From the sequence record OZ240615.1: a stretch of 64,000 nt of DNA; one strand, written 5' to 3'. A program made the position numbers and the translations under genes. The stretch's first letter is position 1. Every line of letters starts with the position of its first letter. The notes under the pieces are model-generated. The model did not search any database and was not told where the DNA came from. It saw only the letters and a program-made list of their open reading frames with translations. Below, piece by piece: positions 3,015 through 59,691 of this stretch.

Positions 3015-5804
3015 ATGAACAATTACGAAAAGAAAACGTTGAGTCCTAACGGACTGAAAGTCTCTAGTCGACCGCAGACGTGGCTTCAACGTACACCTTC
3101 CGCCACCGCTATTATGTCAAAGCTGGTACCGGATGCTGTTCATCGGACAAACACACCCGGTAACGGAGTAGATGTTCCCGATCCGACTATATTTGACCGG
3201 CTCGTGAGTCGGCGCGCCAGAAAAAACTTGGATGCAGAAACCATCATTTCTTTAGCGCCTGATATCAAGCTAATTAAACAAATGATCGTTTCAACGACAC
3301 TTTCTCCTGTTGACATGACCCAAGGGGAGTTGGGGTTTAAAACCGAAGCATCAGAAATCCCACCTAGCGTCCTCAATCAAGTTACAGAAGTGATACGGGA
3401 TCACTTTGAGTCTTACTACCCTTTGCGCGATAAACTCCCTGAGATCATCGGTGAGGCGTTATTTGAGACGGGTGCGTGGGTAGGCGTCATCATCCCGGAA
3501 GCGGTCATCGACGACATCGTTAACTTGCGAGAAGTCGGTAGTTATCTCGCCACCGAAAGCTTTAACGAAAAGCTGAAAACGCATTTTGTTGACGGAACAT
3601 TACGATCAGTTGGTATCCTCGGTGACCCGGGTATCACTGATCAAGAAATAAGAGACGCCAAGAATTCCAAAAAACCGCTGCGCACTACGGCTTCGAGTCC
3701 GTCTTTAGAAAGTATGTTCGCTATGCCACAAACCCGCGATGATTTGGTAAAAATAAATGACAGCGCCACGATCACCGATAACTTAGGTATCATGGGGTTA
3801 GGTCATATTCGTAACCAGATCAATGAAGAACGGTTGAAAAACAAATACCGCTATGGGCGCTCTGGGGCGGGGCTAGAATCTTACGGGGCCAGAAAAGGTC
3901 ATAACAACGTCTCGACGGTAGCGCGGTCACTTTACCATACCCGCAGTGGTCAGACGGCTATCTCGCCGGTGAAAGTCATCCCATCGGCAGCCGAAGCAAG
4001 TCGAAGTAGCATTGGTCATCCGCTTGTGGTGAAATGCCCGTCGGAATCCGTCATCCCATGTTACCCGAAAGGGGACGAACGTAATCATATCGGTTATGTT
4101 ATCGTACTGGACGAGTTAGGTAACCCGTTAAATCTGACTGATGAATTGAACCGCGCTGCCACGAGTGGGCAGATCGGGATCATGGGCGCACAACAGCAGT
4201 TGGACATGACGTCCAGTTTGATTCAACAGACCCGTATCGCTCAGAACGGTATCTGCATGGATACTGACCAGTTAGCCGCTGAGCAACGTATTCGCGTCTA
4301 TAATCAGGTACTGGAAGAGAACATTCTGAACCGCATTAAGAACGGGTTGATTGGACGTAACGTTAAGATGGCATGGAACGAAGACATTATGCGCATCATG
4401 ATGTTCCGTCAGTTTGCCAACCAGAGAACAAATCTGGTCTTTGTGCCTGCGGAACAAGTTGCCTACTTTGCCTACGACTACGACAGTAACGGGATGGGTA
4501 AGTCATTACTGGATGACATCAAACAGGTTTCGGCTTTGCGGGCGATGACGACGTTCGCCAACTTTATGGCAGGTGTGAAGAACGCCGTAGGTCGAACCAA
4601 GGTCACCATGAATATTGACCCTCGTATGCCCGACCCAGAAAAAGCGTACGCTATCTTAGTGGATGAATACCAGCGTATGCAATCCACGGTAACCCCGACT
4701 GATGTCAGCTCTTCGGCAGAAATGTTTCGTGTACTGCGGATGATGGGGACAACGATCGAAGTGCAAGGTAACCCTCGAATTCCGAACACAACGGTCGAAA
4801 TCAACGAATACCAATCGCAAAAACAAATCATCGATGAGTCGTTTACTGATGACCTACGTCGGCAGCAGTATATGGGTCTCTTTGTTACCCCAGCGATGGT
4901 GGATATGACGGACGAAGCGGATTTTGCTATTACGCGTTGGACGTCGAATCAACTCTACGCTAAACGTATCATGATGATTCAGGACGATACCTGTAAACAC
5001 GGGAAAAAATTCGTTCGGTCTTACGTTAATTCTGACGGTATCTTAATTGGTCGTATTCAGAAAATCTTCGAGGAGAATAATGATAAACTCCCAGAAGAAT
5101 TCCAGCTGGATAAAGAAGCAACGATCCCGGAGGAATTAAAATACCTTGACGCTATCGATGCGTATTTCGATGCGTTCTACCTTGAACTGCCACGACCGGA
5201 AAACAACCGGATCGAGAAACAGAAAGAAGAATTCGATAAAGTCAAAGACATGATCGACGACATTGTCGACTGCTACATCTCTTCTGAACTTCTGGGAGCA
5301 TTTGCGCCGGAAGACCAAGGTAAAATCGAAATGCTCAGGGCGCATATGACTGCATACCTGAAACGCGATTGGTTACAAAGTCAAGGTTTCGACATGGGCT
5401 TCATTAAGATGCTCACACCGGTAACCGAAGAAGACCCGTCTCTCGACATGATCAAAGTCTTCTCAACGGACATCACCAATTTACTCCATAACTTTGGTGA
5501 CTTTAGTTCAGCGTTGGTAGCTACACGAAAAGCGTTACTGGAACGAATGGAAGTAGAGAACCCTAAACAACATGAAATCCTAACGGCAAACAACGATGCC
5601 GGTGGCGGTGATTGGGGTGGTGGGGGAAGTGACAGTAATGACTGGAACGAAGGCGGCGACGCTTTCGGCGGGGGTGACGACTTCGGTTCATTCGAAGACA
5701 CCGAGAGCGACCCTTTCTCTACTGAAGGTCTAGAGGAGAATTCTGAAGAGAATGTCGAGGAAGAAAATCCTTTCTCGACACCGGAAGAAGAACCTCCTAT
5801 GTAA
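3015..5804 (+). CDS. Portal protein (phiKZ gp129-like)
   Basis: 929 aa; size, position near MCP and nvRNAP genes, acidic Gly-rich C-terminal tail, several S/A/G-x-E protease motifs (ATES, SLES, GLES). Confidence 0.75.
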   Translation: MNNYEKKTLSPNGLKVSSRPQTWLQRTPSATAIMSKLVPDAVHRTNTPGNGVDVPDPTIFDRLVSRRARKNLDAETIISLAPDIKLIKQMIVSTTLSPVDMTQGELGFKTEASEIPPSVLNQVTEVIRDHFESYYPLRDKLPEIIGEALFETGAWVGVIIPEAVIDDIVNLREVGSYLATESFNEKLKTHFVDGTLRSVGILGDPGITDQEIRDAKNSKKPLRTTASSPSLESMFAMPQTRDDLVKINDSATITDNLGIMGLGHIRNQINEERLKNKYRYGRSGAGLESYGARKGHNNVSTVARSLYHTRSGQTAISPVKVIPSAAEASRSSIGHPLVVKCPSESVIPCYPKGDERNHIGYVIVLDELGNPLNLTDELNRAATSGQIGIMGAQQQLDMTSSLIQQTRIAQNGICMDTDQLAAEQRIRVYNQVLEENILNRIKNGLIGRNVKMAWNEDIMRIMMFRQFANQRTNLVFVPAEQVAYFAYDYDSNGMGKSLLDDIKQVSALRAMTTFANFMAGVKNAVGRTKVTMNIDPRMPDPEKAYAILVDEYQRMQSTVTPTDVSSSAEMFRVLRMMGTTIEVQGNPRIPNTTVEINEYQSQKQIIDESFTDDLRRQQYMGLFVTPAMVDMTDEADFAITRWTSNQLYAKRIMMIQDDTCKHGKKFVRSYVNSDGILIGRIQKIFEENNDKLPEEFQLDKEATIPEELKYLDAIDAYFDAFYLELPRPENNRIEKQKEEFDKVKDMIDDIVDCYISSELLGAFAPEDQGKIEMLRAHMTAYLKRDWLQSQGFDMGFIKMLTPVTEEDPSLDMIKVFSTDITNLLHNFGDFSSALVATRKALLERMEVENPKQHEILTANNDAGGGDWGGGGSDSNDWNEGGDAFGGGDDFGSFEDTESDPFSTEGLEENSEENVEEENPFSTPEEEPPM

Positions 5805-53896: not shown

Positions 53897-53946
53897 GGTA
53901 TTTTACCTTTAAAAAAATAAGATTAACTGATTCATAAAAATAACAG

Positions 53947-53975
53947 CATAAAGAGAGGACCTTCCGGTCCTCTCT
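53947..53975 (-). terminator. Hairpin ending the tRNA/ncRNA transcript, followed by TATG
   Basis: AGAGAGGACC/GGTCCTCTCT at 53952-53975. Confidence 0.75.
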
Positions 53976-54114
53976 CGTACTGACTTATCGTCAAAAGGAT
54001 CTCAGTGTTTAGCTCATAAATGACTTATCGCACATCATCCTTTTCATGTTAAGGTCGCCACCGAAACATGTTTATTCTCGGCTATACGAGTTAGCTTAAT
54101 TTCCAGATTTTTAA

Positions 54115-54340
54115 TACTCGATCCCTTCTACGTTGGAGAAATGGATCGAATAGGGTGACGCCCCCGGACATTTTTGCCGGCTCCTTGCACCTCTTTCGCC
54201 GGAATCCCCGGCTGAGGTCTATGGTCTATGGCCGCCTATTTTCGCTCTAAGGCGTAGGCCGCCGAAAATGACAGGCGTCATAATTAGTACCCCTCGGCCG
54301 ATTCCGCGGCGCGTTTAACCGGCGGGTCGCCGAAGTCTTT
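54115..54340 (-). ncRNA. Candidate GC-rich structured RNA of unknown class
   Basis: No ORF; nested helices TGACGCC/GGCGTCA, ACCTC/GAGGT, GCCGG/CCGGC, GCCTA/TAGGC, TCGATCC/GGATCGA. Confidence 0.5.
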
Positions 54341-54495
54341 GTCTCCCAGAGTTACCAATAAGTTATTGCTCATTGGACAAATCATTCGGGTTACGATCCC
54401 GAACTCCCTTAGCTAACAAGCCTCTACTACTGAGCAGGAATCTAACCTGCACTCTCTGTAAACAATATCACTTGACTAGAGTAGTATTGTAAAGG

Positions 54496-54603
54496 TGGTT
54501 GATAGGTACCGAATCGAACGGCTATCTCGGGCTCCCATGTTAAGGCGCCCCTCGCATGGGAGGGGGCCTAATGCCCGCGCTTTACCTTTAAGCTAGCCTA
54601 TCA
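54496..54603 (-). ncRNA. tRNA-like RNA with 40-nt pseudoknot-capable anticodon loop
   Basis: Acceptor TGATAGG/CCTATCA plus A-CCA, D arm, stem CGGGC/GCCCG, T loop TTCGATT; 108 nt. Confidence 0.8.
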
Positions 54604-54612
54604 TTGAAAATG

Positions 54613-54687
54613 CGACTCCTCCAGGACTTGAACCTGGGACCTACGGTTTAACAGACCGCCGCTACTAACCAACTGAGCTAAGGAGTC
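54613..54687 (-). tRNA. trnN: tRNA-Asn(GTT), CCA not encoded
   Basis: Cloverleaf; GCGGT-CT GTT AA-ACCGT; discriminator G. Confidence 0.9.
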
Positions 54688-54693
54688 ATTATT

Positions 54694-54795
54694 TGGTTGT
54701 TCCCGACCGGGTATGATCCGGTAACCTCCTGCTAAGCAGTGGGCGGCACAGTGGCCGCCGATGCAGGCGCTCTACCTAGTTGAGCTACGAGAACA
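54694..54795 (-). ncRNA. tRNA-like RNA with 30-nt hairpin-containing anticodon loop and 8-bp acceptor stem
   Basis: TGTTCTCG/CGGGAACA plus A-CCA, D arm GCTC/GAGC, stem CCTGC/GCAGG, T arm ACCGG-ATCATAC-CCGGT; 102 nt. Confidence 0.8.
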
Positions 54796-54802
54796 TTGTA
54801 TC

Positions 54803-54878
54803 TGGAGCAAGCAGCGAGGTTCGAACTCGCGACCTATGACTTGGAAGGACATCGCTCTACCAACTGAGCTATGCTTGC
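54803..54878 (-). tRNA. trnG: tRNA-Gly(TCC)
   Basis: Cloverleaf, U73, CCA; one T.T mismatch in the anticodon stem. Confidence 0.9.
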
Positions 54879-54887
54879 TTTATTGAG

Positions 54888-54959
54888 CAGAAGCACCTAG
54901 ATTCGAACTAGGGGTACGGAGATCAAAGCCCCGGGCCTTAACCGCTTGGCTATGCTTCT
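54888..54959 (-). tRNA. trnQ: tRNA-Gln(TTG), CCA not encoded
   Basis: Cloverleaf; CGGGG-CT TTG AT-CTCCG; G73. Confidence 0.88.
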
Positions 54960-54966
54960 ATGCGTT

Positions 54967-55050
54967 TGGTGGGGAAGGGTAGATTCGAACTACCGAAGCC
55001 GAAGCAGCAGATTTACAGTCTGACCCATTTGACCACTCTGGAACTTCCCC
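54967..55050 (-). tRNA. trnY: tRNA-Tyr(GTA)
   Basis: Cloverleaf with long variable arm, CT GTA AA loop, A-CCA. Confidence 0.92.
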
Positions 55051-55844: not shown

Positions 55845-55884
55845 TGGTGGGTCCAGCAGGTTTTGAACCTGCGACCTATAGCTT
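55845..55884 (-). pseudogene. Orphan tRNA 3' half (starts at the anticodon loop)
   Basis: AA-GCTAT-AGGTC-GCAGG TTCAAAA CCTGC-TGGACCC-A-CCA; no matching 5' half found nearby. Confidence 0.75.
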
Positions 55885-56337
55885 AGGTTTTATGTTTCCT
55901 TTTTGGCAACCTTTACGGTATTCTTCTAAATTAAAAACACCATTTACTGAGTATTTTACAATAGTAGCAAAAGGCAGTCCGGTAAAAAGAGATGCATCCC
56001 GAATACTATCATAAACCCACCCATCGATGGTCCATGTCATTCTTAATTTATCTGACCCATCACGGTGTGCATCTTTACTATCGTAATAATTATTGAGGTG
56101 AGTCCCTTTTTCGACGTGGTCGGGATTACAACACCTACGATTGTTGCATTTATGTCTAACGAGCATATCTTCTGGAATTTCCCCTTTAGACATTGCATAG
56201 GCTAGTCTATGGACATTCCATTTTACTTTATTAATATTTATCTGCCCGTAACCTTGACTTGTAGATTTTGTCCAGTTCCAACAACCCGTTTCTTTATCGA
56301 TATCAATTTTGTCTTTTACAATATCGTAAAAGTTCAT
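55876..56337 (-). CDS. Free-standing HNH homing endonuclease
   Basis: CWNW...HRLAY...VRHKCNNRRCCNPDHVEKGTHLNN (HNH) plus C-terminal NUMOD1-like DNA-binding segment (YDSIRDASLFTGL). Confidence 0.88.
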   Translation of the reverse strand: MNFYDIVKDKIDIDKETGCWNWTKSTSQGYGQININKVKWNVHRLAYAMSKGEIPEDMLVRHKCNNRRCCNPDHVEKGTHLNNYYDSKDAHRDGSDKLRMTWTIDGWVYDSIRDASLFTGLPFATIVKYSVNGVFNLEEYRKGCQKGNIKPKL

Positions 56338-56359: not shown

Positions 56360-56435
56360 TGGTGGCCCTGGCGGGATTCAAACCCGCGACCAAGCGATTA
56401 TGAGTCGCCTGCGCTAATCACTGCGCCACAGGGCC
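56360..56435 (-). tRNA. trnI: tRNA-Ile2(CAT, lysidine type)
   Basis: Cloverleaf closely resembling enterobacterial ileX (GGCCC...GGCGA-CT CAT AA-TCGCT...GGGCC-A-CCA). Confidence 0.85.
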
Positions 56436-59231: not shown

Positions 59232-59460
59232 AAGGGCGACGGATAAGGATATAACCATCCTCACCGCCACCCATAGCCATTCAGCTATAAACAGAATCCA
59301 GCGCGACCTATTTCACAATAAGATTGGGTTTAGGTTTATAATCTAGTGCTCTACCAGCTGAGCTATCTGCCTCCAAGAAACACTCTGTGAATGTGTCCAG
59401 GTAGGCAGAGCGGAATTCGAATCCGCGACCTCTAGAATTCTTTCCGTAAAAGAAAGAAAG
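59232..59460 (-). ncRNA. Circularly permuted tRNA-like RNA 2 (Y-RNA/YrlA-like topology)
   Basis: 3' half 59436-59402 precedes 5' half 59372-59342; acceptor AGGCAGA/TCTGCCT, anticodon-type stem CTAGA/TCTAG, perfect D and T arms; 29-nt linker. Confidence 0.8.
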
Positions 59461-59461
59461 T

Positions 59462-59691
59462 TCAGTCCGCTATTTTACTGTCTACTCTTTATCTTTAAGC
59501 GTGTGAGGCGATAAGATAAAGTTAACACTAACCATCCGAGTAGCATTATGGGTGCATTGATGACTGCGTCTACCAATTCCGCCATTCTCCCATAGTTTGG
59601 TGGGAGAAGAAAGATTCGAACTTCCAGTGAGGTCATCACACCTGCTATACGGACTAACAATAAAGATAAAGTTGGCCTCAATCTTTATTAT
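59462..59691 (-). ncRNA. Circularly permuted tRNA-like RNA 1 (Leu-type D arm; Y-RNA/YrlA-like topology)
   Basis: 3' half 59636-59598 (ends A-CCA) precedes 5' half 59591-59560; acceptor GGGAGAA/TTCTCCC; stem GTCATCA/TGATGAC; 6-nt linker. Confidence 0.85.

Follow-up and report, generated by a model that had tools for sequence, protein, structure and literature searches.

The tRNA operon of Klebsiella phage vB_KpM_Centimanus (OZ240615.1, 299,730 bp) holds two genes that look like tRNAs and carry a hairpin inside an oversized anticodon loop. Are these genes tRNAs that await splicing, tRNAs in decay, or RNAs with a role other than decoding? We addressed this question for the element at 54694-54795 (E1) and its sister at 54496-54603 (E2), within a 64-kb stretch of the record (64,000 nucleotides), referred to here as the window.

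The relatives of this phage are phiKp24 (Maaswegvirus) and the Siatvirus-type Klebsiella jumbo phages. Since phiKp24 encodes nucleus-shell and tubulin proteins, the group is taken to be nucleus-forming. According to ARAGORN, the minus strand carries every tRNA gene of the window; E1 is therefore read from 54795 to 54694, and the features below lie on that strand.

Anatomy of the element

E1 (54694-54795) is a tRNA-shaped gene of 102 nt with a 30-nt anticodon loop, seen in the sequence and by ARAGORN in intron mode, and present in 12/12 related genomes. An earlier note on this DNA had described a tRNA-like gene whose anticodon loop is greatly expanded, and the features it listed are found where it placed them.

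The acceptor 5' strand UGUUCUCG begins with a 5' U (54788-54795) and pairs with CGGGAACA (54698-54705) over 8 bp, one of them U.G. Its eighth nucleotide, a G, is an extra residue ahead of U8, and the connector is then UA. The D arm, GCUC-AACUAGGUA-GAGC (54769-54785), contains A14, A15, G18, G19, and A21. G26 sits between this arm and the anticodon stem, whose 5' strand CCUGC (54763-54767) forms 5 bp with GCAGG at 54728-54732. The 30-nt "anticodon loop" (54733-54762) consists of AUC, a hairpin, and nine further nucleotides, CACUGCUUA. The inserted GC hairpin, GGCGGC-CACUGU-GCCGCC (54742-54759), has pairing probabilities of 0.6-0.86. The variable loop is AGGUU (5 nt), the T arm is ACCGG-AUCAUAC-CCGGU (54706-54722), and the gene ends with an unpaired A and an encoded CCA (54694-54697).

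The full set of class-I tRNA tertiary-core nucleotides is present, and the core can be read as U8:A14, A9:A23:U12, G10:C25:G45, C13:G22:G46, A15:U48, G18/G19-U55/C56, and G26:A44. Structural positions of E1 and E2 follow a manual numbering; MAFFT misaligns the two elements in their 3' halves. The top half of E1 –acceptor stem, T arm, D/T elbow nucleotides, and A-CCA– is intact. The extension of 3 nt, GC hairpin, and 9 nt cannot present an anticodon.

Detection and predicted folding

ARAGORN in intron mode called tRNA-like genes at c[54694,54795] and c[54496,54603], exactly the boundaries given in the earlier note, and drew the cloverleaf of E1. Across the whole 64-kb window, the two elements were the only additions to eight ordinary tRNAs, and 60 dinucleotide-preserving shuffles of the window gave no call. 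The tRNA-likeness of E1 exceeds chance. Neither element was reported by default ARAGORN or by the Rfam tRNA model, and RF00005 gave no match on 54694-54795 at the gathering threshold or at E <= 10.

The folding z-score of E1 is only -2.0. In the ViennaRNA ensemble, the CCUGC/GCAGG stem forms at about 12%, because GCAG prefers a competing CUGC at 54736-54739; pairing with this inner CUGC repeat reaches about 77%. The cloverleaf-plus-hairpin fold lies at -37.7 kcal/mol vs. -38.9 kcal/mol for the minimum free energy structure, a gap of 1.2.

In the public records, PQ182779 labels both E1 and E2 as "tRNA-OTHER" (102 and 108 nt), and both are blank in the Centimanus and phiKp24 records.

The sister element

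E2 (54496-54603) is a tRNA-shaped gene of 108 nt with a 40-nt loop, also called by ARAGORN in intron mode and present in 12/12 genomes. The architecture common to both elements, as the earlier note had proposed, is evident in the sequence and in the intron-mode calls. E2 has a 7-bp acceptor stem starting at U1-A72, one extra nucleotide ahead of U8, A73, and CCA. Its loop opens with AUU, continues with a GC hairpin (about 10 bp, 6-nt loop), and closes with 10 nt ending in A. The insert layout is shared: 3 nt, a GC hairpin with a 6-nt loop, and 9-10 nt ending in A. The hairpins themselves have no common sequence.

The tertiary core of E2 equals that of E1 except for the 13:22:46 triple, which is U:A:A in E2 and C:G:G in E1, a coherent change. 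On the 3' side of the T stem, E1 is one nucleotide longer than E2; in Centimanus, this nucleotide pairs with the extra 5' nucleotide and produces the "8th pair". The 8-bp acceptor stem put forward for E1 is present in Centimanus E1, and does not extend to the sister, with its 7 bp. Among relatives, E2 is 97-100% identical, and conservation ends exactly after ACCA.

Operon setting

Within the tRNA operon of the phage, E1 occupies a tRNA slot as a conserved gene. The non-coding block at 53933-55050 holds tRNA-Tyr, tRNA-Gln, tRNA-Gly, E1, tRNA-Asn, E2, a third mini tRNA-like element, an RNA of about 370 nt, and a terminator. Its GC content is 50-54% vs. approximately 38-42% in the flanks, and no ORF of at least 45 aa was found on the minus strand between 53896 and 55234. 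The operon spans from tRNA-Tyr to the terminator at ~53,935-53,975, which is annotated in phiKp24. E1 is separated by 7 nt from tRNA-Gly upstream and by 6 nt from tRNA-Asn downstream, spacers that are typical of tRNA genes.

The operon is built as a chain of stem-closed modules with short spacers between them; in many of these modules, an initial U pairs with A and the 3' end reads N-CCA. E1 and E2 have a gene-encoded CCA, unlike the Asn, Gln, and Arg tRNAs of this operon. The neighboring proteins (a GNAT acetyltransferase, an NMT1/TAXI-like protein, an HNH protein, and several unknowns) gave no clue to RNA handling and no evident partner for E1. A scan for promoter and terminator consensus sequences was uninformative.

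Several other observations concern the surroundings of the two elements. The stretch 54040-54495 (-), of about 456 nt and located 3' of E2, is conserved, non-coding, and structured (GC 50-54% vs. ~40% in the flanks; MFE -151 kcal/mol, z = -3.1), and matches no Rfam family. It extends towards the operon terminator, whose stem lies at 53953-53974, and is possibly a large structured phage RNA. The third, minimal tRNA-like element, at ~54420-54486 (-), has an acceptor-like stem UACUACU/AGUAGUA and a T arm GCAGG-UUAGAUU-CCUGC; it lacks a proper D arm and a proper anticodon arm. The operon of the relatives contains additional stem-closed non-coding modules that are absent from Centimanus (L002:2669-2921, L002:3030-3190, and L006:1965-2079). 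The operon acts like a cassette array of structured RNAs.

Beyond the non-coding block, an HNH endonuclease gene (55876-56337) is inserted between tRNA-Met and tRNA-Leu, an insert that MJ359 does not have. At its 3' end, the segment 55849-56018 (-) carries a T arm and the 3' half of an acceptor with an ACCA end, and looks like a tRNA fragment on a homing-endonuclease cassette. A tRNA with the anticodon UUA (ochre-suppressor type) is found at 59400-59483 (-), and also in phiKp24. Just outside the window and about 9 kb off, gp056 of phiKp24 (L352:2386-2757 (-)) carries the depositor note "putative tRNA nuclease WapA". Pfam, NCBIfam, and PDB lend this label no support; the 123-aa protein has a hydrophobic C-terminus and looks like a small membrane-anchored protein.

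Conservation among related phages

The comparison covered 12 related genomes: 11 sequenced phages of the clade (13 records) and one IMG/VR contig. E1 and E2 were retained in all 12, together with the Met, Leu, and Asn tRNAs; the Arg, Gly, and Ser tRNAs were retained in 11, Asp in 10, and Tyr and Gln in nine. None of the close relatives has an ordinary tRNA at the E1 site, and distant relatives have other insert-bearing versions. Between Centimanus and MJ359, identity is 93.1% for E1 and 97.2% for E2, compared with 77.6-100% for the true tRNAs, 74-83% for the two larger neighboring CDSs, and 93.9% for a 54-aa ORF. By these identities, E1 and E2 are conserved to the same degree as the true tRNAs.

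The lower end of the tRNA range is the CAU-anticodon tRNA, at 56360-56435 (-) in Centimanus and L002:1186-1261 in MJ359. It is annotated as Met in one record and as Ile2 in the other; given this difference and the identity of only 77.6%, it is possibly a different gene in the same slot.

The presence of E1 and E2 in 12/12 genomes, the variable loss of six true tRNAs, and conservation at the tRNA level all favor the earlier proposal of a deliberate RNA class and not of decay. E1 is probably a working RNA and not a dead tRNA, because every relative keeps it.

Variation is small, with 12 variable sites across 12 close genomes, and for this reason covariation support is thin. Five sites vary in the inserts of E1 and E2 taken together, and each of them is unpaired: three belong to hairpin loops, two to internal loops. 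Three of these substitutions lie in the E1 insert, where the hairpin loop varies between U and C. The hairpin stems of both elements are invariant among the relatives. "U33" of E1 is a C in two phages, and the sole change in the anticodon stem of E2 converts a G-C pair into G.U. The few changes in E1 and E2 respect the structure.

Centimanus E1 differs from its relatives at seven positions, five of them in the T arm and a sixth at the adjacent position 54705, in the 8th acceptor pair; six of the seven changes fall within 18 nt. Through them, the G.A appositions at 49:65 and at the extra pair become A-U and G-C. In the T loop, positions 54 and 58 are swapped (U..A to A..U) and position 60 is also changed. 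No donor copy of the Centimanus-specific T arm was found in the window. In the relatives, the T arm is GCCGG-UUCAAAU-CCGGA, and owing to this canonical UUCAAAU loop their E1 copies pass the Rfam tRNA threshold, with 38-39 bits vs. 29. With its non-canonical T loop (A54, U58), Centimanus E1 falls below that threshold, which might also be taken as a sign of early decay.

The atypical T loop AUCAUAC, to which the earlier note had drawn attention, is therefore present in Centimanus and is not a class feature; the same applies to the 8-bp acceptor, since the 8th pair is G.A and the T loop canonical in the relatives.

Ancestry and distant relatives

The D arm and anticodon stem of E1 resemble those of phage tRNA-Pro and tRNA-Arg genes. 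The D arm is 92% identical over 26 nt to that of an rV5-type tRNA-Pro, and its region is 91% identical over 32 nt to a phage tRNA-Arg. The tRNA-Arg(ACG) of roseophage DSS3_MAL1 shares with E1 the CCUGC/GCAGG stem and the AGGUU variable loop, and its anticodon loop is of the normal 7 nt. From this likeness, we infer that E1 is a class-I tRNA with an expanded anticodon loop.

Distant relatives were fetched through the neighboring NMT1/TAXI-like protein, at 66-75% identity, and are Erwinia and Salmonella jumbo phages of the phiEaH2/SPN3US type. Their tRNA clusters contain non-canonical tRNA-like modules between the tRNAs. phiEaH2 and Asesino carry a 119-nt tRNA-Arg-like gene with an irregular hairpin of about 70 nt in place of the anticodon arm, and the T stem of this phiEaH2-type gene is identical to that of Centimanus E1. 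Another tRNA-like gene, on contig L019, has as its "anticodon arm" a 7-bp stem capped by UUCG. Common to these elements is a tRNA top half, with varied dummies in place of the anticodon arm.

The 119-nt phiEaH2-type gene is annotated as "tRNA-Ile" in two records. A module of about 150 nt at L018:7771-7926 has a T arm CUCCG-UGGGAUU-CGGAG, an acceptor starting with U-A, and a C-CCA end; its 3' 50 nt are kept in 20 records of Erwinia, Salmonella, and Serratia jumbo phages, where they are mostly unannotated.

At the sequence level, an E1-specific pattern searched in IMG/VR returned the same clade only, with no relatives of E1 outside it. Scanning IMG/VR and metagenomes for the E1 anticodon stem gave no new E1 relatives either; it returned canonical YU-NNN-R loops, many of them probably by chance, and one gene on a GC-rich viral contig, L119 (minus strand, ~4280-4373 of the reverse complement). 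This tRNA-Arg-like gene has the CCUGC/GCAGG stem and a 27-nt loop with a CCCCC-GCGA-GGGGG hairpin. The contig is unrelated, and the gene is an independent analogue of E1.

One D-arm motif, scanned in IMG/VR, gave at least 119 stretches. Among the matches listed, most were callable only in intron mode, 36 unique ones had a perfect anticodon stem, and 22 of these 36 lacked a canonical loop start. The motif also matches bacterial assemblies and many archaeal genomes, the latter as expected for true introns.

Comparison with known RNAs

Large-phage tRNAs with such inserts were first noted in Lak megaphages, whose highly conserved tRNA introns have been called enigmatic and guessed to be common in large phages (Devoto et al., bioRxiv 10.1101/356790). 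The insert-bearing Lak tRNAs and E1 are alike in being oversized genes of a large-phage tRNA array, missed under bacterial settings, with a conserved insert in the anticodon loop. However, the Lak tRNAs become normal isotypes after excision (Phe, Gly, Thr, and Tyr), whereas no normal anticodon loop results from E1. E1 also differs by its extra acceptor-side pair and by a paralogue with an equally non-canonical layout. Being oversized, located in a phage tRNA array, detected only by intron-aware search, and conserved in its insert, E1 is a further variant of the insert-bearing tRNA-like genes of large phages, which are known but unexplained. Literature searches found no paper on these elements, and such RNAs are absent from a 2026 review of jumbo phages.

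Species 1 and 2 of phage T4 (rnaC and rnaD) share the setting, as stable RNAs other than tRNAs at the end of a phage tRNA cluster. To our knowledge, they have been without a known function for decades. A T arm is found in the 3' part of rnaC, a segment that intron-mode ARAGORN reports as tRNA-like. However, at 139 and 119 nt, rnaC and rnaD have another architecture and not a cloverleaf with an expanded anticodon loop. Among the T4-type phages in the phage collection, none matches E1 over more than ~30% of its length and none matches E2.

The earlier note had likened the 8+5 helix to that of bacterial tRNA-Sec. The pairs are indeed there, in Centimanus E1 only, which combines a 13-bp acceptor/T stack (8+5, all Watson-Crick or wobble) with an unpaired discriminator and CCA. 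The analogy did not survive the comparison, since G.A stands in place of both the 8th acceptor pair and the first T pair in the remaining 11 genomes. Moreover, the 6-bp D stem with a 4-nt loop, the long variable arm, and the UCA anticodon of tRNA-Sec are missing; in E1, a 9-nt loop caps a D stem of 4 bp, and no 7-nt loop with UCA is present. We rejected tRNA-Sec identity on these grounds and on the 7/5 helix of the sister. A canonical elongator tRNA was also rejected, given the 30-nt loop, the lack of a purine at position 37 by any excision, and the lack of an RF00005 match.

Archaeal and eukaryal tRNA introns share with E1 an insert in the anticodon loop and a would-be anticodon that is partly paired into the insert. 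E1 differs from them in having no bulge-helix-bulge (BHB) motif and no Y-U-NNN-R start, and in its bacterial host. On inspection, a BHB intron was discarded because the 37/38 junction falls inside the hairpin stem and no 4-bp helix lies between two 3-nt bulges. A group I intron, with a core of at least 200 nt (P3-P9), was discarded as well, with a loop of 30 nt, an insert of about 23 nt, and no Rfam intron match at E <= 10.

YrlA and the bacterial Y RNAs resemble E1 as non-decoding RNAs with a tRNA-like acceptor/T/D module, and YrlA is bound by Rsr/Ro. YrlA-type Y RNAs occur in some phages, near tRNAs, and Ro with a tRNA-like partner has been mentioned for jumbo phages. However, the ends of E1 form an acceptor stem with CCA, whereas those of YrlA form the Ro-binding stem. 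The YrlA family (RF02553) was rejected with 22.5 bits vs. a threshold of 69, in a partial match over part of E1 and tRNA-Gly. A tmRNA, with its tRNA-like domain and tag frame, was also rejected, as the tmRNA mode of ARAGORN gave no call in the window.

Discussion

Could E1 be a tRNA pseudogene that decays while hitch-hiking in the operon? It has no usable anticodon, standard tools miss it here, its T loop is non-canonical in Centimanus, and the cluster rearranges often. However, E1 persists in 12/12 genomes while real tRNAs are lost, its conservation is that of a tRNA, its substitutions respect the structure, a paralogue has the same design, and analogues occur in phages whose neighboring protein is only 66-75% identical; altogether, we give decay the least credence. 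A purely cis-acting role is also very unlikely: the tRNA-like fold would only direct RNase P and the 3' cuts, as processing "punctuation" that releases or stabilizes the neighboring RNAs of the operon. The stem-closed modules with U-A starts, N-CCA ends, and short spacers are compatible with it, but true tRNAs on both sides of E1 already give such signals, and the conserved insert and the D/T tertiary nucleotides would be left unexplained. If the insert were instead an intron, a phage or host activity would remove it to leave a decoding tRNA. ARAGORN proposes Ser(GCU) with a 23-nt insert for E1 and Pro(UGG) with a 33-nt insert for E2, the putative introns contain all the substitutions, and conserved "introns" have been reported in large-phage tRNAs (bioRxiv 10.1101/356790). 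For E1, we went through every split of a 7-nt loop into k nucleotides from the 5' side and 7-k from the 3' side, and each excision scheme leaves a pyrimidine at position 37. Furthermore, the long arm required by Ser and Leu tRNAs is missing from its class-I body, a true tRNA-Ser(GCU) is nearby in the relatives, and "U33" is a C in two phages. The insert has no bulge-helix-bulge, is too short for group I, and matches no Rfam intron, and no RNA ligase or endonuclease is annotated within the first 100 kb of phiKp24. Bacteria are not known to have a tRNA splicing endonuclease. The loop of E2 could yield AUUAGG|A (Leu UAG, with the canonical 37/38 site) or AUU|GGGA; since it formally allows Leu(UAG) and Pro(UGG) loops, splicing of E2 stays a minor rival, and splicing as an explanation for the elements is improbable.

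A natural "tRNA scaffold" is also doubtful, although it merits more weight than these. Here, the tRNA body would serve for processing and stability, and the hairpin with its flanking single strands would be the active part, displayed to bind a protein, to pair with another RNA, or to be processed into a small RNA. Ponchon and Dardel reportedly engineered tRNA scaffolds for recombinant RNA, and RNA grafted into the anticodon stem of such a scaffold accumulates stably in E. coli. The design is E1-like, with a foreign hairpin on the anticodon stem of an intact tRNA that uses tRNA processing and resists nucleases; the engineered scaffolds are artificial, whereas the design of E1 is natural and conserved. 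The insert layout common to E1 and E2 and the invariant hairpin stems speak for a scaffold. However, variation falls in the hairpin loops (3/5 insert substitutions), and the two hairpins, without common sequence, do not recur in the 64-kb window as a target or operator (up to three mismatches for the E1 hairpin). In distant relatives, the inserts are unrelated, one of them being a plain stem with a UUCG cap.

The reading that we favor, with a probability of roughly 0.45, is that E1 and its sister E2 are functional, non-decoding tRNA mimics derived from a class-I tRNA. E1 would be co-transcribed with the neighboring tRNAs and excised by host tRNA maturation enzymes, with RNase P acting at the 5' end and trimming to CCA at the 3' end. 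It would then accumulate as a stable 102-nt RNA with the insert retained. Its tRNA-like top half (acceptor, T arm, elbow, and CCA) would occupy a protein that recognizes the tRNA body or CCA, outside translation; host immune effectors directed at tRNAs and phage enzymes are candidates. In favor of such a mimic are the intron-mode calls beyond chance, the complete tertiary core, the retention and tRNA-level conservation, the changes that respect the structure, the lack of an excision scheme with a purine at 37, and the encoded CCA; distant relatives, too, put other dummy anticodon arms on an intact top half. Against it, the anticodon stem of E1 is thermodynamically ambiguous in the predicted ensemble, the T loop is non-canonical in Centimanus, variation among the close genomes is small, the searches gave no sequence-level relatives beyond the clade, the neighboring genes offer no evident partner protein, and a decoy has to compete with a very large cellular pool of tRNAs.

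E1, E2, and the other U-started, N-CCA-ended modules of these jumbo-phage operons may be RNA anti-defense decoys, a further step that we consider improbable. As decoys, the tRNA mimics would soak up or inhibit tRNA-attacking effectors of bacterial immunity, such as CCA-end-modifying enzymes or nucleases that dock on the tRNA body. The idea is attractive because phage tRNA clusters are now viewed as counter-measures to tRNA-targeting immunity.

These genes also matter for annotation, since they are blank in some records and appear as "tRNA-OTHER" or even "tRNA-Ile" in others. The insert-bearing elements are among the most stably kept members of their cluster, in a phage family that is cultivable, infects K. 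pneumoniae, and is under consideration for therapy. If the decoy idea were true, such RNAs would represent a new class of RNA-based counter-defense, and could explain the tRNA-like stable RNAs of phages like T4.
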